The notes beneath the pieces are model-generated. The model was not told the DNA's origin and ran no database searches. It saw only the letters and a list, made by a program, of their open reading frames with translations. The translations under genes were made by a program, and so were the position numbers. Positions 25,041 to 48,427 of a DNA stretch of 64,000 nucleotides are shown piece after piece. This stretch comes from Haliotis rubra (lineage: Eukaryota), in assembly GCF_003918875.1 (NCBI RefSeq), contig NW_025767168.1, forward strand, positions 558,001 through 622,000, in the 5' to 3' direction. Within the stretch, counting starts at the first letter, position 1; each line of letters opens with the position of its first letter.

Positions 25041-25408
25041 CCGTATTGTCTTTGATGGTCTTTGTCGAAAACAGATGATCCTGGGCGTTGAATTCCCCTT
25101 GTTATAAAAAACGCTGTTAGACAGTAGAACGATCGGTGACTGCCAAACGATGATAAACTCCTTTGGTGTAATTGCTTGCATATTATGTTTAACATAATCC
25201 TTTCCAAATCCACACACTTCTTCCAACGGTGCTGGAAAGCCTTGATCCCACTGGTACAGAAGATTTCACCCTGGCGTTGTAAAAAGACCCTTTCAACGGA
25301 AATGACGCTGTACCCGGACCAGTTATGGGAATGTAGGTAATTATCCTGTACCCACTATCAGGTAACGGTATGCTTGTCAATCGTGTATGTTCATACTAAG
25401 ATATTCCT

Positions 25409-25676
25409 ATGAAATACACAATGCCATTTTAGAAAGTGGTCAAATGTAACGTATGTTGTATTTGGGATTACACTTTCTTAGTAAAGTACAGATTCTAGTA
25501 CTTTTGGGGTTGAGTCCCATCCGGGATTCGAACCCACACCCTCAGAGTCAGGCACCTAATCGCCAGCACACAAAGTCAGACGCCTAGACCGCTCAGCCAC
25601 CGCGGCGTCCACGCGGCTTGTATACTAGAATCTGTACTTTACTAAGAAAGTGTCATCCCAAATATAACATACGTTA
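25409..25676 (-). mobile_element. SINE family D (tRNA-Leu-like head) with an inverted duplication of its body
   Basis: Head ggtggctgagcggtctaggcg...gtgtgggttcgaatccc; inverted repeat 25447-25500 / 25623-25676; 12-bp TSD taagatattcct (25397-25408 / 25677-25688). Confidence 0.88.
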
Positions 25677-27399
25677 TAAGATATTCCTGTTACAATAACA
25701 GATGAGATACCGAACAAACTGCATTGACCAACTGCCTGTTTCAACATGTAGTTATTAGAACTGGTATATCAGGTAAACCACGATGTCACATTGAAAAACT
25801 GCATAAACTGCCATTTGCTAAATAATAATTGTACTGGTCGGAAATCAATCACTGCTTCAACTAATTCCACTGGACATAATGTTTTAAAGATTTTATTTAT
25901 GTTCCAGATGTGACGTACTTTTCATCTGGATGTTTCATTTCTTGTACTCTATTTGTGTTCTGTAAACACTTGCTCAAAAGGTCTCTGCTTTTGTACTGTA
26001 CTGAATTCCTCCACCATGTCAAAACGTTGCTAAATTTACAGTCAATATAACAAAACGTCATATTAGTTTCATTTTAATCAGTCTGTGAGGTTTCCACTGT
26101 ACCCTCGGGGTCGGTCGCATCTCATTTGAGAATAAAAGCAACCTATCCTATTGACAAAAGTAAAATAAAATCTCTAATCCGAATGGTAATCAAAACGCTT
26201 TTTACCGCAAATCACAAAATATGTCCGCATATGGCATATCATTTCATCTCAGTAATGACATCGCTTCGTCCAGACTGACCTTTCAACGGAGCTAAAAGGA
26301 ATGGACAGTGACGCATTAGAGAAGTAAAGGGACATTATTGATACTCACTGTAGTGGAAGATGAAAACTGGTTCAACCACGTTGCTGGCGTAACCTTTTTT
26401 GCTCGTTTCACTCGAACCTGGGTTACATTTGGTTCGTTGTACCTCAGTCGAATGTTGCGATCTAAACAATTGGTCATTATTTCTTTCTCTTTTGTGCTAC
26501 TTTCTTCAAAGCAAAGTAGAAAATACAATGCCTTAACTCAGTGTGACGCCAGCCGACGCTAGTTGATTATCTCGCTAGGAAATGGATCATGGTTTTTCTA
26601 TTCCCAATGTTAAATCGGAGCCCTTACTTTCAAACATTGTTAAGAATAGGTTGAAATTCATCTGAGCTTCAGTTTAACCTCTATTTACGTATGGAATACT
26701 CAGAATAGCCCCTTTCATTTTCTGAGAACAATGGTCATGACAGAGAGATCTTAAGAAATCTGAAAACTAATTATTGATCATGATGGATGCTTCGGTTGAG
26801 GTAATTATAGTTATTTGTTGAGATGATATATAAACACGCCACAAATCTGGCATTATCAGAATGGCACCATATTCATTTGGAATAATGTTTTTTGGCACAA
26901 CGTCAGAATTGCACATCCAAGTTAGTCATGAGTTGAACAGCAATTTTACAGATGACAAAACTAATTTTTGAACTGGATATTGACTCAAATAGAAATGTCT
27001 GGTGTTTTCATTTTAAAAACATGTATGGGGCTTGTGAAACCAACTCATCTGTTTCATAAATCTCGAAATGTGTACAGATTCAAAGTGACAAACGTCTTCA
27101 ACAGATTGTTTGACACAGGGAATAATTTCCATTTTCTTATTTCAGCAGCCTTCTCTTTGTCTCTAATGGGCAACTTGTGGGCGATGGCTACTAATTATGA
27201 CCCGGTCCTGGCATACATGGACTAATGAGTGATTCTGGATAGTCAAATGGAGAGGTTTTACTTCAGTTGTCTGAATTTGTAAAAGACATGTATTTATTAC
27301 GTTAATGTATATGTTAAAGGTAACCTTTTCCGATCACCTTAACCCCCTTTGCTGCACTTATATATCTGTAAAGCCCATTTATACATTCCAATAATAGAG

Positions 27400-30330: not shown

Positions 30331-31729
30331 GGGAGACGTGATATACCTGAATTACTTTGGTTTGCATCGTTAAATAACATATATTCAATAGTAAAGCAAC
30401 GGCTTCATGGATAACAATGTCTTCCAAGCTAGCTTGAAAACGGTGTAAGAATCTACACCGAAACGTCGCTCTGTGCAATAAACATGACGTTGTTATCAAT
30501 AATATCGTTCCCTTTATTATGATGAAGTGTGTTTGTGTTATATAAGCCTCACTCTGACGAATCTGACTCACCGTCAAATTAGTGTAGATTTTATGGGTAT
30601 GAATACCGTAGGGTATCGCACACCCAATGTGACTACACCCTGCATTCCTAGCAGGACAACCCCTATCAAAAGTAAAGATGATGTTTAAATGACATGAATA
30701 AGACACAGAAGCTTGTGCCTTCAGCAGAATTATTCACAAATTGAGTTCATAAAGACAGAAAGCCTCATTGCATCAAGCAACTCAAGTCAACACACACTGC
30801 CAGATCACCACCACCAATCCATACAACCAGAAAGCTAAAACATAACCCTTATATATCTATATTCATTACTTTCGAGTTTTATGAATGTATTTACATTAAC
30901 TATTTTAATTTGCACTGTAAAATAGTTCTTGGCTTGTAGCACTTTAAACACATTAAAATCATTTCATATTTCCTTTTGACAAACTTGTGGTCTCGTATAT
31001 ATATATCCACGATTTCAGTTATGCAGGGTTGACAGATAAATGGGTTGGTCTTTCATGATAACGACAGGCTCGGAAGTCATATACACATAAAGCTTACAGG
31101 AACCATGTATCATTCAAGAGAATGACTGGTTTCCCATGTGGGTGCTGCTTCGTCATTCCTTTACAGAATTATGCTTTCTGTTTGCACATGGTTGTAGAAG
31201 TTGAAGAGAGGATTGTACCATGGGAGCAGAGCATAAAACACTTTATATATTTTCTATCTCTCAGTGTTCAACCCATGCTTTTTAATCACGCTATCGATGC
31301 TGGTTTTGTGAAGTAGACTATGTCATCTATGACAAAGTGAGAAAATGTGTCTGCATCAGTAATAATGTGAAGTCAACGATGATTTTGGCACAGCGAAAGA
31401 TTATTCTTTCAATGATATATTCTACCAAGTGAATGACTCAGTGATTTTGTGAACAGTGTTCGTCTAAATCCCGAAGCGGAAATATATTTTTTATAGTGCA
31501 ATGAGAAATTTGTAGATTTTAAAATGAATCAAGCTGCAAACGAAATGGAACCAGTTTGTTGGGAAATGAAAATCATAAGACACAAGGACATTAAGGAAGT
31601 TCGCTTTGTTCGTAATCATCTCTCAAATTTGTTTTCGAAACGTGAACTTAGTTCTTTGAATGGCATTTAGAAGTGATGGAAATAAAGAATGGAGCTTTTT
31701 GTGGATGTTAACTTCTTTATTATGAGGAA

Positions 31730-31769
31730 CACAACGTTTCGGGGTATGTCCTTACTCCTTCATCAGGTG
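31730..31769 (-). ncRNA. Minimal type I hammerhead ribozyme motif
   Basis: cac CUGAUGA aGGAGUA aggaca UACCCC GAAAC GUU gug. Confidence 0.6.
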
Positions 31770-31933
31770 AATGGATGATATGAGTCAGAGAGCATATGTA
31801 TGTACACGTAAGAACAACAAAAGTAATAGAACAACAAAGATGCAGGCTTCACAATGGAAGACAGCAGTTAACTGGCGTTGATGTGTGATTGGCAAAGCCA
31901 GCATTTAACAGTTAATTAGCGTTTCCTGTCATT

Positions 31934-31973
31934 CACCTGATGAAGGAGTAAGAACATACTCTGAAACGTTGTG
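31934..31973 (+). ncRNA. Minimal type I hammerhead ribozyme motif
   Basis: cac CUGAUGA aGGAGUA agaaca UACUCU GAAAC GUU gug. Confidence 0.65.
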
Positions 31974-34926
31974 TTCCTCATAAAAAAGAAGTTGACATGC
32001 ATAGAGAGAATTCTCTTCCTTATGAACTTCCTTATGTACGCCATTCAGACCATGTGATCAACATAACATTGCCAAAGTGCCATGTGTGTAAGATATATAT
32101 ACCTCCATTACATAGCTGATAGCATTTCAGAGCATATCATTACCTTCGTATTAGCAAAACAAAACAGTGTTTCTTGAGAACATTCGTTGGTATCAGCACC
32201 AAAAAGAACGACACATAATATGGACACTATACAAATTGAAAAAAATAGCCTGACACACTTATAATTCCATTAACACCAGCTCTTCATGAAAACACGGTGC
32301 ACCTGGTAATGATATTGCCTTTTCCTTTGTTCAAACTTCTACAATCCGTTTACGGCTACAACACTTCATGGAATATTCTTCAGAACATTTATCCAAAGTA
32401 AGATATATTCGTGTACTGGATACCAAATTGCATGTATTTATTCACTCCCCTTCGAGAATAGAGAAACGCTTGTATGTCTGACCAATAATAACCACGTTGA
32501 AATACAAATATAAATCCCATGGTGTCTTGGACAGACTAGGTACTTGGTTTTGCACTTGTAGAAATCGCCGACTGACGTGTTTCGCGATATCTGACAGTTT
32601 CACAGATCATGACAACGTGGGGTTGTTGTTCATAACGTCAACCACTGGTTCGCGTGTCTCAGACTCGTTTATTGACTAACTCACCACTGCGACCTTAAAG
32701 AAATACTCAATTGTTTTTGTTTCATGTACGATGTTTCATGGTCTTTATTGTCAGCAGAACATCTGAACTTGTACATAACAGACTTAATTCAAACTTTACA
32801 TATCGCATTTCGGTTTCATTAAAATTTCGTCCCTGAATCTTGTGGTCCATCACTTGATTGTCTGGTTGCTTCCCGGCCCCTATCGTACGCAAGTAGTACG
32901 TCTGTGCGGCGTCAAGAAAGCAAATCCTTACTTTCATATGTAAATTGTATGAGTGGCGGGACATGTTCATATGCTTCGCAAAGACCCACAATCGAGACTA
33001 GTTATTCTCTGACGCTGTTGTTGTATATGTAAATGTCCACACACACATAACTATTTAAGCTGAACAAAGGGCCACCGAAAACCGCCTTAGCAAATAATCG
33101 TCACGACATACTGTAAGCTATCGAATCATCTGGCAATATCTTTTAAGACATCTCTTTGAGTATTAACATCTTTGGTATACGTGTCATAAATAGTTTCGAC
33201 GGCAATTTGCACTGTGTGAGGTTACATCTGGATGATGGACAGACACGAACCGTCAACTTCAAGGTTATCTATCCTGGGAACTAGGTTGTCTAGAAGCGTG
33301 AGAGGGGACGCGCTGACCACAGACCGACGAAGGTTTGTCTGGGGAAGAGAAATGCCCTTGTGAGATATGCGAGAGGACGGAAGCAAGGGGACAACCCCTC
33401 TATTAAGGCGCCCCGGGATCGATACCTGCCTTACATGTCATTAGCGGTTCAACAACTGGCCCAGCGATGACGCACTGTCGGGAATGGATTGAAGTTACTG
33501 ATCAAGGATGATACACTTTAGGACAGTAGGAAGTTCAGCTCAAAGTTCAAGTTTCAGGATACGCTCGAGCATTCTTGTTTTTAAGGAAATATCGTCTGTT
33601 TATACTTTTTTGGACAACCATGTGGTGGCTGCTTTTTCAAGATATGTTTGTGAGTGGGGGTTTATAGTTATTCATGTGATTAGCGAGAAAACAAGGAATG
33701 TTTCTTAAGCATCCAAAAACCAATAAGATTATGATATATATAATTCACAAGTTAAAGAGCAACGGATTCCTTCTTATTACCATATATAAATGGGTTGACG
33801 ACAGCACGTTTGTTTGCTGAATGCCGTGCTTATAAATATTCATCAGTATATTCTAATTCAATTGTTTCTTTGGAACCTTTCCAAGCGGCGGTTTTCTTTT
33901 TGCTTTGGGGTTTTACGGACAAACAAGAAAAGCATGTCATGTTGTTTGGCATCTTTGGTCAGCCTGGTATTGACATAGATGGCATGTGATCATAATACAC
34001 CGTCTGTATGACTACATGTCAAAGAATCGTCATCAGTTATTGTAACCATCGAGGCGCTTCTGAAGCTAAGATGGAGTGGGCGTCGTTACTGCTAATGTGC
34101 GTCTTTTAATTCCAGCCATGTCCCTTTGTGCACATGGAACATCAAGTTTATTCTGGTTGGGAAACAAATTCGTGTCTTCGGCGTGACGAGCACAGAAAGT
34201 AGCAATGCCACCCCTTTAACAGTTTGCACAAAGTTTAAGTGCGTCCAATACAGCACATATACATAGCAATAGCCCACTGACTTGTCGATAATATTTCCCC
34301 ACACCGCATTTCCAAATCAGAGACGTCTGTCAATTCACTCATTCGAATTCGAATAGGAACAAAAGACTACATATTTGCAAGTCCAAGTTTGGATTATCTT
34401 TATCGGTCGAAATATATATACAAGGATAACCATATTTGATTGTGTGAGTTATAGTTGTTGATTTTTTTAAGAAAGGTATTCATAACTAACAAATGACTCA
34501 TATATATGAGTAACTGTTGTGTCCAAAATTGTGGCGATTATTACCAATGGTGCCTAACCTGCAGTTTGTCTTGTCCAGAAGTGATTATACAACTGGTTTT
34601 AACAGCAACATAGTTGGTACAAGTCACACGGTACATATTCTATAAAGCCGCTACAATATGGGTAACCAGCTGGAGTCAAAACAAAAAAAACAATCCAAGG
34701 GAAGTAACTCTAATTATTCTGGTGCATCTGCTGGACCAATGGCCCATGGTAGAGTTTGCGCGGTATGTCTTCCGGTCACATGACCCCTCTGATAAACTCC
34801 ATTTAGGCACCAGGGTGCAAACAAAGTAACCAAAATAGCGTCTTCGTCAAATTTACGTGGAACTCCATTAACAAACTAATTTTGTAACAATGAGTCTGCC
34901 ATGAATGTCGCCAACAGTACGTACTA

Positions 34927-35054
34927 CATTGGCGGATCCAGAGGGCGGGTTCAGGGGGTTCGCTCCCCCGTTGAAAATGACAGAAGACCACAGTAAAGAT
35001 TGTTTTTGCGTTGGCGGAGCCAATGGGGGGTTTAGGGCTTCGAACACCCCCCCC

Positions 35055-35122
<68 letters not shown>

Positions 35123-35146
35123 TCAAAATCCCTGGATCCGCCCATG
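34927..35146. mobile_element. hAT-like MITE containing a (CA)n microsatellite
   Basis: TIR cat(t/g)ggcggatccag; (CA)n at about 35058-35120; TSD not clear. Confidence 0.7.
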
Positions 35147-35208
35147 TAATACTTAGGACTCCAGTTTCTCCGTTTCAGTAGACTTTAAATAGACATACTT
35201 TTTATAGA

Positions 35209-35374
35209 CTGACTGACTGAGTTTGGTTTTACGCCGCTTTTAGCAATATTCCAGCAACATCACGGCGGGGGACACCAGAAATGGGCTTCACACATTGTAC
35301 CCATGTGGGGATTCGAACCCGGGTCTTCGGCGTGACGAGCCAACGCTTTAACCATTAGGCTACCCCACCGCCCC
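35209..35374 (-). mobile_element. SINE family A, young
   Basis: Full-length reverse-complement copy; TSD act(t)tttataga. Confidence 0.92.
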
Positions 35375-35954
35375 ACTTTTATAGAGCATGTTTCAAAAGT
35401 AATATAGCAAACACGTACTATCAGATTTAGCTATATATGGGTGCTATGTGTGGATCTCATACTTTCCAATAGTTTTCAATAGTTTAACCCAAATAAAACA
35501 GATGCCATGCAATGACACATGCACTGTCAACTGACAAATATTTTCAAATGTCATATCCGTCACAGTTCTCGAACACATAAAATACAAGCTGTTCAGTTCT
35601 TAACTTTATTCGGTACAACACAAGTAACCACCTGCTGCAGTCGGGCATTGTACTATCACATAACATAGCGCAATGATATTTACAAATATAGTACAGTAAA
35701 CGAGATGCGTAGATAATACTGAACACAACAAGTTTGGGTTTATGAAGGTTGGGGGTATGTTTTGAAAGTGAAAACTGAGAACATAATTTCAAATATATCC
35801 CCCAAAGTATTCATGATACCTAACTTTTTTACTTCTGAATACAATATGTTATAACACATTACCCCGGTGGTCATGCAATGGTCTTTGTTTCAAAATTGAT
35901 CCATGAAATATTCCTGGATACATTCTTACAACAGGATTGCCATCCACATTCGGG

Positions 35955-45679: not shown

Positions 45680-45901
45680 GGTGAGGTGAGGTGAAATTGA
45701 GTTTAACGTCGCGCTGGAGAATATTTCGCTCATATTACGACATGCATGCGTGTGTATGTGTATGTGCGGCTGCTTATACTAGCCCAGACCAACAAGTACC
45801 ATATTTTAACGTCTTTTGGTATGACGCGGTCCGGGATCGAACCCGCGACCTTCCGCTCTCCGGGCGGACGCTCTAACCACTATACCACGGAGGCGGTCCT
45901 A
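45680..45901 (-). mobile_element. SINE family C (tRNA-derived, (CACCT)n tail)
   Basis: A box TGGTATAGTGG, B box GGTTCGATCCC, then gtcataccaaaagacgttaaaatatggtac; TSD tttcttctttga (45668-45679 / 45902-45913). Confidence 0.88.
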
Positions 45902-46030
45902 TTTCTTCTTTGAAAGGCATTTTAGAAGTTCAGTTGATGAAGAATGATGACACTGTTTATGGATATATAACTTCTTTTATTCTGTGAAGGGCGACGTTTC
46001 GACAGATTCTAATGCCGTTGTCAAGCAAGT
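45902..46030 (-). mobile_element. Penelope-like 3' end with a variant hammerhead core (45991-46026)
   Basis: gc UUGACAA cGGCA uuagaauc UGUC GAAAC GUC gc, followed by aataaaagaagtt...acttctaaaatgcc as in the 31.7-kb element. Confidence 0.68.
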
Positions 46031-47623: not shown

Positions 47624-47692
47624 TTAGAAAGTGTAATCCCAAATATAACACATGTTACATTTGACCACTTTCTAAATGGCATTGTGTAATCA
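47624..47692 (+). mobile_element. SINE family D, 3' fragment
   Basis: agaaagtgtaatcccaaatataacacatgttacatttgaccactttctaaatggcattgtgta. Confidence 0.8.
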
Positions 47693-48220
47693 TAGCTACA
47701 TGTAATGTATTTTAGCCGTTTGTAATGCACTTCACTGTGCCACCGGATACGCTCACCTTTTCACGATCTCGTGTTCACGTCAATATTTGGCAGTGATTCA
47801 TAGGCATATTTTCACGATACATTTGTACATGAAATCGTAAATCTCTTCTTTTGGCGGATATTACTAATGATTATTAACCAGAATTGGCTATTTCATTTAA
47901 TTACCACTGGTGTGAATAACGATTTATACAAAGTTGTTATGACAACCCTAAATCTCTATTTTATGAAGGTATCACAGAAGATATGATGTTTGTCCATTCC
48001 TAAATAAACATGTCAATTCCAGATGGTTTCTTTACATGTTGACATTTTGTTGCTTTTGAACGCAATGGTGTAATCACGTCTGTTCTCACCTCACAGTAGG
48101 GCTGCACGGTATTACCGGTATACCGGTAAACAGCAATACGATATTGTAACAATTAGGTATCGCGATTCGTTTATGATGTACCGGTATACCGACAAAGATT
48201 TATTTGTTCAACTCTAATCC

Positions 48221-48402
48221 GCTGATCGGTCTAGGCGTCTGTGTGCTGGCGATTAGGTGTCTGACGCTGATGGTGTGGGTTCGAATCCCGGATGGGACTC
48301 AACCCAAAAAGTACTAGAATCTGTACTTCACTAAGAAAGTGTAATCCCAAATATAACATATGTTACATTTGATCACTTTCTAAAATGGCATTGTGTATTT
48401 CA
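48221..48402 (+). mobile_element. SINE family D
   Basis: Same head and body as the copy at 25409-25620; 12-bp TSD caactctaatcc (48209-48220 / 48403-48414). Confidence 0.9.
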
Positions 48403-48427
48403 CAACTCTAATCCATTCAACACCGTA

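Follow-up and report, generated by a model that had tools for sequence, protein, structure and literature searches.

Dependence on a LINE belongs to the textbook definition of a SINE. LINE-dependent tRNA SINEs (SINE2; for those of molluscs see PMC4758252) are short and non-coding, have a 5' end with tRNA-derived boxes A and B and a body unrelated to tRNA, and are found in thousands of copies with TSDs and 5' truncation; the element studied here, family D, is like them in all of these respects. The abalone SINEs described by the mollusc study possess either (CACCT)n ends or LINE-derived heads (PMC4758252). Insertions by Penelope-like elements (PLEs) are recognizable by partial tandems, by a 5'-truncated copy in inverted orientation, and by a tail of 30-40 bp at one end (PMC8557442). 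Reverse transcription starts internally at two adjacent stem-loop sites, and both DNA strands are cleaved and extended (PMC11167929). Non-autonomous PLE derivatives comprise animal non-LTR retrozymes (PMC7229834; bioRxiv 10.64898/2026.07.22.740005), elements of Chlamys, among them MRC1 (PMC8557442), and short Penelope elements of Heliconius (PMC6685494). They carry either hammerheads or pLTR sequence of the parent PLE, and a Pol III promoter of tRNA origin has been reported for none of them. Here, we report on family D, a retroelement that is non-autonomous, carries a putative internal Pol III promoter derived from tRNA-Leu, and most probably owes its reverse transcription and integration to the RT/GIY-YIG protein of a PLE, and not to a LINE.

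Results

A sequence-only reading of a 64,000-nucleotide stretch of Haliotis rubra DNA (the window) had proposed family D as a repeat family. Its existence was confirmed: two copies with flanking TSDs and one fragment lie in the window, and thousands more are present in the genome. Copy 1 (25409-25676, minus strand) possesses perfect 12-bp TSDs on both sides (TAAGATATTCCT; 25397-25408 and 25677-25688). Its main arm (25409-25612, minus strand) covers unit positions 1-204 and terminates with a long 3' end at 25409. Along the same strand, this arm contains box A (25589-25599), box B (25524-25534), the stems of a tail hairpin (25471-25478 and 25431-25438) with an apical palindrome (25448-25457), and the sequence AAAATGGCATT (25420-25430). 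A 10-nt filler (25613-25622), which partially repeats unit positions 5-11, joins the main arm head-to-head to a 5'-truncated inverted arm (25623-25676, plus strand; unit positions 113-166), whose outer end is a short 3'-end site. This is the 54-bp inverted copy inside the TSDs that had been noticed before. Because the contig of a related organism joins position 25396 to position 25677 and is thereby shorter by exactly the 268-nt complex and one TSD, the 25.4-kb complex is one single insertion; it is also absent from a third organism. Copy 2 (48221-48402, plus strand) consists of a single arm that is 5'-truncated at unit position 16 and extends to the long 3'-end site; it contains box B (48278-48288) as well as a tail hairpin (48334-48381). 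It is flanked by CAACTCTAATCC (48209-48220 and 48403-48414), and both full copies thus carry the 12-bp TSDs ascribed to them. An old, 5'-truncated tail fragment (about 47626-47697, plus strand; unit positions 134-207) is without a clear TSD.

The description of the head as tRNA-Leu-like was borne out as well. Its D arm (box A) and its T arm (box B) align with genuine tRNA-Leu genes of this genome, for which we used two genes confirmed by ARAGORN as the reference. The spacing between boxes A and B is about 10 nt longer than in these genes, the acceptor stem has been lost, and a tRNA fold is no longer formed; a tRNA was called in the family D head neither by ARAGORN nor by Rfam. Family D hence combines a tRNA-derived 5' head carrying boxes A and B with the remaining traits of a SINE2 element, i.e., it is short, non-coding, dispersed, and multicopy, with TSDs and 5' truncation. 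The exception is the 3' terminus, which is neither A-rich nor, as had been pointed out already, a simple repeat. In one probable RNA run, the SINE was present only within longer contigs, an observation that is uninformative with respect to Pol III.

Searches of the genome yielded at least 3346 candidate copies, and the best 40 of these are 91-100% identical to the query. An exact 22-nt word from the tail occurs 933 times, and a word spanning the junction between the tail and a downstream module, X, occurs 233 times. The repeat unit measures 297 nt rather than approximately 200 nt. Module X, a conserved stretch of 94 nt, lies 3' of the tail in roughly one copy out of four and terminates in TTTTT. 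It is complementary to the head, and the predicted fold of the 297-nt RNA (-110.4 kcal/mol, z -5.6) contains 51 pairs between the head and X.

We assessed the insertion scars in a sample of 30 loci with 52 arms, which were picked by their best match to a query containing the long end. At half of these loci (15/30), the element continues in the 5' direction through X into a preceding unit, and the resulting tandems reach up to about 2.2 units; this is the partial tandem, pseudo-LTR-like arrangement of PLEs. Ten of the 52 arms begin at unit positions -2 to +6, a concentration of 5' ends some 13 nt upstream of box A that a fixed transcription start would give.

Multimers of this type might also be the product of a retrozyme-like cycle, in which the 297-nt RNA is circularized and multimers are generated by rolling-circle reverse transcription with any RT. 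Such a cycle fits head-to-tail multimers of an approximately 297-nt unit whose 5' ends vary and whose 3' end is fixed, and the predicted panhandle places both ends of the RNA together. Animal retrozymes are likewise tandem units of 170-400 nt with a link to PLEs (PMC7229834; bioRxiv 10.64898/2026.07.22.740005). The type I hammerhead that, along with a circular RNA form, marks the tandem units of a retrozyme is missing from family D, however, and a search of two family D units with Rfam (either strand, E<=10) detected no ribozyme, hammerhead included, that could produce ligatable ends. The accumulation of 5' ends at unit position 1 is in line with a linear transcript, and about 75% of the family D tails have no X behind them. 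Circularization would account for the multimers only and is compatible with PLE enzymes; we consider a retrozyme-like cycle improbable.

The 3' ends of the 52 arms are distributed in a bimodal fashion: 28 fall at unit positions 197-208, 16 at positions 159-174 (11 of them at 164-168), and 8 elsewhere. Across the 30 loci, the two 3'-end sites are 38 nt apart, and the stretch between them (unit positions 167-204; 25409-25446 on the minus strand in copy 1) constitutes an optional tail at one end only, within the 30-40 bp known from PLEs. In three organisms, contigs break off at both sites in large numbers, from tens to more than 100 per site. A head-to-head, 5'-truncated inverted arm adjoins the 5' end within the same TSD in 16 of the 30 insertions, and the inversion is consequently not a peculiarity of copy 1. 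Eleven to 12 of these 16 insertions combine a long with a short end, and none combines two long ends; the query used for picking the loci contains the long end, which leaves pairs of two short ends outside this sampling. Perfect TSDs of 12-14 bp enclose the entire complex at 12 loci. We considered a preference for AT-rich targets and discarded it, given that the GC content of the TSDs (37%) is about the average of the window.

These scars bear directly on the question of whether family D is an ordinary LINE-dependent tRNA SINE whose inverted arms result from L1-like twin priming and whose tandems reflect later DNA duplication. A tRNA-derived head, TSDs, and 5' truncation are found in any SINE, TSDs of 12-14 bp are within the LINE range too, and pattern searches did not find a PLE partner. 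Yet an A-rich or microsatellite end is absent, and there are two fixed 3' ends 38 nt apart. Furthermore, the start of the inverted arms of family D is fixed, and these arms repeat sequence already contained in the main arm, whereas twin-priming arms start at variable internal sites. As a control from the same genome, we inspected a LINE-type SINE with a (CAGT)n tail at the same loci; it has one type of end and only 1-2 inverted neighbours among about 50 copies, as opposed to the 16/30 of family D. The two-end scar does recur in an RT/GIY-YIG PLE of this genome: the autonomous PLE-A, whose ORF encodes both domains, possesses two end sites that are 40 nt apart. Dependence on a LINE is therefore highly improbable, and because its insertion scars are typical of PLEs and not of LINEs, family D probably borrows Penelope enzymes. 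The scar features agree with the published PLE hallmarks (PMC8557442, PMC11167929), and the proposal of a Pol III-type SINE that uses the PLE machinery is now supported, mainly by evidence that was not at hand when it was made, such as the two 3' ends, the frequency and long-short pairing of the inverted arms, the tandems, and the comparison with other elements of this genome. That the complex copies are artefacts of assembly or of DNA rearrangement has a negligible chance of being correct: assemblies are known to have difficulties with structures of the PLE type (PMC8557442), but whole complexes are bracketed by perfect TSDs at 12 loci, the exact empty site exists in another organism, and the rule of one long plus one short end recurs at unrelated loci.

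The sequence-only reading had placed much weight on the tail of family D, which it aligned to the parts following the hammerheads in two Penelope remnants at 31.7 kb and 45.9 kb. The similar spacing was confirmed, but the sequence similarity barely exceeds chance. Local alignments were not significant against shuffles (p 0.03-0.86), end-anchored global alignments gave z values of 2.1-3.6, and comparisons of the family D tail with PLE tails against the genomic background gave p values of 0.03-0.15. An HMM built from 17 tails of the 31.7-kb family, run on about 330 kb with a cutoff of E<=10, failed to recover a SINE tail. What the family D tail and the PLE tails have in common is the hairpin design and short motifs only. 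Judged by these alignments, tail homology is a weak argument, and the case for the PLE machinery rests on the other evidence.

Of these two comparison elements, the one at 31.7 kb, PLE1 (31650-31954, minus strand), belongs to a non-coding family of about 273 nt with a tail hairpin and an end, ..CTAAATGCCATTCAAAGAAC, at 31651. It contains a minimal hammerhead motif (31736-31766, minus strand) and this remnant has an inverted arm (31929-32048, plus strand) with a hammerhead motif of its own (31937-31967). PLE2 (45901-46000, minus strand) combines a tail hairpin with a partial hammerhead (GAAAC, 45996-46000) and has the end ..CTAAAATGCCTTTCAAAGAAGAAAT. The PLE1 family shows long ends plus inverted arms that stop about 31 nt earlier, within the hairpin loop, and one of these short-ended inverted arms adjoins a TSD of about 11 bp. 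Rfam gives no score to PLE1, and we refer to it as putatively PLE-derived only on account of the motif-level hammerhead and the scars. Among the 100 matches listed, no PLE1 tail continues into an ORF. The conserved sequence ..AAATGCCATTCAAAGA.. of PLE1 and PLE2 was considered as the start codon of a parental ORF (MPFKD/MPFKE), an idea that found no confirmation, as there is no shared continuation in the 100 listed PLE1 tails. A 368-aa ORF (L049) upstream of one PLE1 copy contains no Pfam domain.

We searched for an autonomous partner of family D at the protein level with the GIY-YIG Pfam model and the PLE-A ORF, which yielded the RT-bearing PLE families A-D only. No partner was identified among the families inspected, and all of them have a (TA)n terminus, a feature never seen in family D; both results count against the PLE reading. 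So does the outcome of targeted pattern searches, which recovered no SINE-type tail in connection with either a hammerhead or the 3' region of PLE-A/C type. A hammerhead core combined with a SINE-type tail had no match in the genome. The pattern GAAAC plus a SINE-type stem gave 24 matches, of which the judgeable ones are SINE copies (three checked), and that of a PLE-A/C-type 3' region plus a SINE-type terminus gave one match, apparently by chance. A PLE RT is absent from the window and from 50 SINE/PLE1 loci, and an Rfam scan of the window found neither a hammerhead nor another ribozyme. A hammerhead is not universal among PLEs, because the Naiad and Chlamys PLEs are also without canonical ones (PMC8557442).

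Discussion

The structures found at the family D loci can be arranged into a plausible insertion pathway. Pol III would start about 13 nt upstream of box A, at unit position 1, and in X-bearing copies would stop at the TTTTT that closes X. The tail hairpin may be bound by the PLE protein, whose endonuclease would nick the target twice, 12-14 bp apart. Reverse transcription, presumably by the PLE RT, would begin inside the RNA at either of the two sites that the genomic 3' ends mark, one beside the apex of the hairpin (unit position ~165) and the other about 20 nt beyond its base (unit position ~203). Roughly every second event would involve cDNA synthesis primed by both nicked strands, one at the long and one at the short site, and such dual priming is expected to leave two head-to-head arms with a filler or microhomology at their junction, enclosed by one TSD. 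The partial tandems observed would arise where cDNA synthesis goes beyond unit position 1 and continues into X and a preceding unit. This could occur either through a template jump from the 5' end of the RNA to a 3' end, aided by the predicted panhandle of head and X, or through read-through transcripts from tandem donors.

If family D is indeed a tRNA-headed SINE that depends on PLEs, the definition of a SINE would have to be broadened, and a Pol III transcript without a hammerhead would be able to hijack PLE enzymes in trans. Its thousands of young copies provide a natural readout of the poorly understood integration of PLEs, with two-site internal initiation, two-strand priming, and tandems, and this readout can be directly compared with the sole in vitro study (PMC11167929). 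The pairing of long and short arms and the uncopied, head-complementary module X translate into testable predictions on the geometry of the PLE ribonucleoprotein. Elements of this kind are likely to be mis-annotated in mollusc genomes as satellites, unknown repeats, or LINE-type SINEs.

Our literature search found no description of a partnership between a tRNA SINE and a PLE. In comparison with SINE2 elements, family D has neither an A-rich or short-tandem-repeat end nor an identified LINE-like tail; its 3' ends fall at two sites separated by 38 nt, and inverted arms and partial tandems are frequent. With the non-autonomous PLE derivatives it shares a non-coding sequence, head-to-tail multimers or pseudo-LTR-like partial tandems, PLE-type scars, and a presumed dependence on the PLE RT; it differs from them in that no ribozyme was found and in being without clear sequence identity to any PLE. 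The Sm-alpha and Sj-alpha elements of schistosomes are short, abundant, SINE-like retroposons that are tied to the world of PLEs and hammerheads, as is family D, but they carry an active hammerhead.

The Poseidon PLE of Anolis studied in vitro (PAc; PMC11167929) resembles family D in that it has two neighbouring internal RT starts in a stem-loop, that the stretch between them forms an optional genomic tail, and that both DNA strands are cut and extended. PAc is autonomous, however, and its start sites lie within its own ORF, beside the hammerhead; no strand difference in the use of the start sites was observed in that study (PMC11167929), whereas the paired arms of family D use different ones. 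RNA downstream of the start sites is required by PAc and remains uncopied (PMC11167929), and by analogy it is possible that module X has a similar role. The TRIMp3 elements Helenus and Ajax (PMC10886601) are non-autonomous retroelements that, like family D, possess a Pol III promoter that originated from a gene for a small RNA and depend on a partner other than a LINE. They differ in being LTR-type elements with a PBS and a PPT, TSDs of 4-5 bp, and dependence on LTR retrotransposons (PMC10886601). With more doubt than confidence, we suggest that, after the LINE-dependent SINEs and the LTR-dependent TRIMp3 elements, family D may be the first representative of a third type of parasite with a Pol III promoter, one that is ribozyme-less, tRNA-headed, and Penelope-dependent. 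In this tentative scheme, its scars would record two-sided TPRT in vivo, in which each strand has its own start site and long and short ends are hence strictly paired. Module X, transcribed but normally uncopied, would end Pol III transcription, recruit the RT downstream of the starts, and pair with the head, thereby promoting template jumps and tandems.

Copies of Family D in the Window and in the Genome

Family D, the tRNA-headed SINE described in the sequence-only reading, is a real family, and only its tail similarity to Penelope-like elements (PLEs) had been overstated. Both TSD-flanked copies were borne out: copy 1 (25409-25676, minus strand) is enclosed by perfect direct repeats of 12 bp at 25397-25408 and 25677-25688, and copy 2 occupies 48221-48402 on the plus strand, bracketed by 12-bp repeats as well. 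The third piece was recovered as a tail fragment at about 47626-47697. Searching the 1.38-Gb genome assembly with copy 2 as the query returned at least 3346 candidates, 40 of which were scored and had 91-100% identity to the query; a 22-nt tail word occurs 933 times in exact form. At C79:264215-264360, three exact tail words at 62-nt spacing resemble a tail-only mini-tandem. For window positions 25150-25950, the SINE part was present in runs from five further organisms (runs X4-X24), and family D is thus common to several related species.

Insertion Scars of Family D

We set 30 loci on three tandem periods, which yielded 52 arms. Their 3' ends were bimodal, with 28 at unit positions 197-208 (numbered along the repeat from a start upstream of box A), 16 at 159-174 (11 of them at 164-168) and 8 elsewhere. 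A distance of 38 nt separates these long and short sites, of which the short one adjoins the apex of the tail hairpin, right after a 10-nt palindrome, and the long one lies ~20 nt beyond the hairpin base. A second arm, inverted, 5'-truncated and head to head with the first, was found in 16 of the 30 insertions. Long-site and short-site arms were paired in 11-12 of these 16 and two long-site arms in none; pairs of two short-site arms fall outside this sample, since the loci were the best matches to a query containing the long end. Perfect 12-14 bp TSDs enclose the whole complex at 12 loci.

The inverted copy that had been noticed at 25.4 kb is such an arm (unit 113-166), joined through a 10-nt filler to a main arm of unit 1-204, and it obeys the long-plus-short rule. 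In a 2156-nt contig of a related organism, window position 25396 is joined directly to 25677, which demonstrates that the 268-nt copy 1 complex was inserted as one event; a third organism lacks the complex as well, the insertion being missing from both other species compared (B and C). Contigs broken off at each end site number from tens to more than 100 in all three organisms compared.

As a LINE-type control, we used a different tRNA-headed SINE family (35081-35380, minus strand) that terminates in short tandem repeats, (CAGT)n/(CACT)n. Among its ~50 copies in the sequence examined, at the same loci, there was a single kind of 3' end and only one or two inverted neighbours. A SCARNA7 candidate at 34994-35186 was rejected as a (GT)n microsatellite false positive (30.9 bits in Rfam versus a gathering score of 65).

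The scars, which are independent of the tail and stronger evidence than it, support the earlier proposal that family D is inserted by the PLE machinery.

Similarity of the Tail to PLE Tails

The tails of the SINE, of PLE1 and PLE2 (the elements of the 31.7-kb and 45.9-kb remnants) and of PLE-C, an RT-bearing family of the same genome, have a common design: an imperfect hairpin, an outer stem AGAAGT/ACTTCT (AGAAAGTG/CACTTTCT in the SINE) closing a loop of ~25-37 nt, and ATCC after the 5' strand of the stem. In the SINE, PLE1 and PLE2 only, AAA(A)TG(G/C)C(A/T)TT and about 10 letters follow the hairpin. In plain-sequence terms the similarity was weak: local alignment gave p 0.03-0.86, end-anchored global alignment gave z 2.1-3.6, and an HMM of PLE1 tails did not find the SINE tail. 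Against the genomic background, p was 0.03-0.15. Judged by the significance that the sequence-only reading had itself demanded of it, the similarity nearly failed. The case for PLE dependence rests on the scars.

The tRNA-Leu-Like Head

Neither ARAGORN nor Rfam called a tRNA in the family D head. We compared it with two genuine tRNA-Leu genes of the same genome; the D arm/box A and T arm/box B are common to both almost letter for letter, in agreement with the proposed tRNA-Leu-like head. The head has lost the acceptor stem, and its middle part exceeds that of the genes by about 10 nt. Boxes A and B occupy unit 14-24 and 79-89, respectively. Ten of the 52 arms start between unit -2 and +6, consistent with a fixed start some 13 nt ahead of box A. 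The shared boxes and the clustered arm starts make a Pol III origin plausible. In the one probable RNA run, family D was seen only inside longer contigs.

Near-identical tRNA-Leu genes, repeating every 518 bp or so, form long tandem arrays at C2708:406811-430190 (at least 46 copies) and C231:19-10695 (at least 10). Within the window, a single Rfam tRNA match exceeds the gathering score (90-161, 34.8 bits); ARAGORN makes no call there, so this match may be another SINE head.

A 297-nt Repeat Unit With Module X

The repeat unit is longer than had been recognized. At many of the 30 loci, family D copies stand head to tail with a conserved 94-nt module X between them, giving a tandem period of 297 nt. 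Module X comes after the tail, and its closing TTTTT immediately precedes position 1 of the following unit. Genome-wide, the word at the tail-to-X junction was counted 233 times, so that about a quarter of intact tails continue into X.

For the full 297-nt RNA, the predicted fold has an energy of -110.4 kcal/mol, which corresponds to z -5.6 relative to dinucleotide-shuffled sequences, and 51 base pairs are predicted between unit 1-80 and X. When X is reverse-complemented, 18 of 22 letters agree with head positions 23-45 (p about 0.007). Because of this complementarity and predicted pairing, X appears to be an ancient, degenerate copy of the head in inverted orientation, the relic of a head-to-head insertion that was absorbed into the unit. 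Pol III transcription might be terminated in X. X could also provide the RNA stretch beyond the start sites that the Poseidon enzyme requires but leaves uncopied (PMC11167929), and it might bring the RNA ends together, permitting template jumps that would produce tandems.

Candidate Partners and Comparison With Penelope-Like Elements

An autonomous partner of family D was not found among the RT-bearing families PLE-A to PLE-D, all of which terminate in (TA)n, as the SINE never does. Three targeted sequence patterns recovered no PLE with a SINE-type tail, and none of the 100 PLE1 tails listed had an ORF continuation. PLE-A, the dominant autonomous PLE of the genome, has an RT plus GIY-YIG ORF and ends in ..GCAATAT or 40 nt further. 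It is young and high-copy (L051-L080; C2800:1637373-1637633, C2147:898112-899893); its open frames reach 1064 aa, a minimal hammerhead motif lies about 100 nt past the stop codon, and its ends carry (TA)n. The related PLE-B, PLE-C and PLE-D (43-56% identity) have intact frames too.

PLE1 is a hammerhead-bearing mini-element of about 273 nt with at least 1848 candidates and the 3' end ..CATTCAAAGACCT; four of six inverted arms stop about 31 nt short of that end, within the hairpin loop, and one of these four abuts a TSD of roughly 11 bp. In one PLE1 copy (L047:780-1359, minus strand of C2630), the 5' part has expanded into a tandem array in which a 35-nt unit is repeated about 16 times. Immediately beyond the end of the PLE2 remnant lies an inserted tRNA-like SINE head (45827-45889, minus strand, 22 bits).

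Non-autonomous PLE derivatives on record comprise retrozymes (PMC7229834; bioRxiv 10.64898/2026.07.22.740005), Chlamys MRC1 (PMC8557442) and short Penelope elements (PMC6685494); LTR-type elements with a Pol III promoter have been described (PMC10886601), and mollusc SINEs have been surveyed (PMC4758252). None of these papers describes a SINE that combines a tRNA-derived head with a link to a PLE.

PLE insertions are recognizable by partial tandem arrangements, by an adjacent inverted copy truncated at its 5' end, and by a tail of 30-40 bp that only one of the ends carries (PMC8557442). The Poseidon PLE studied in vitro begins reverse transcription inside the RNA at two neighbouring stem-loop sites, the stretch between which forms the one-end tail; each of the two DNA strands is cleaved and then extended (PMC11167929). 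The scars of family D correspond to every one of these features.
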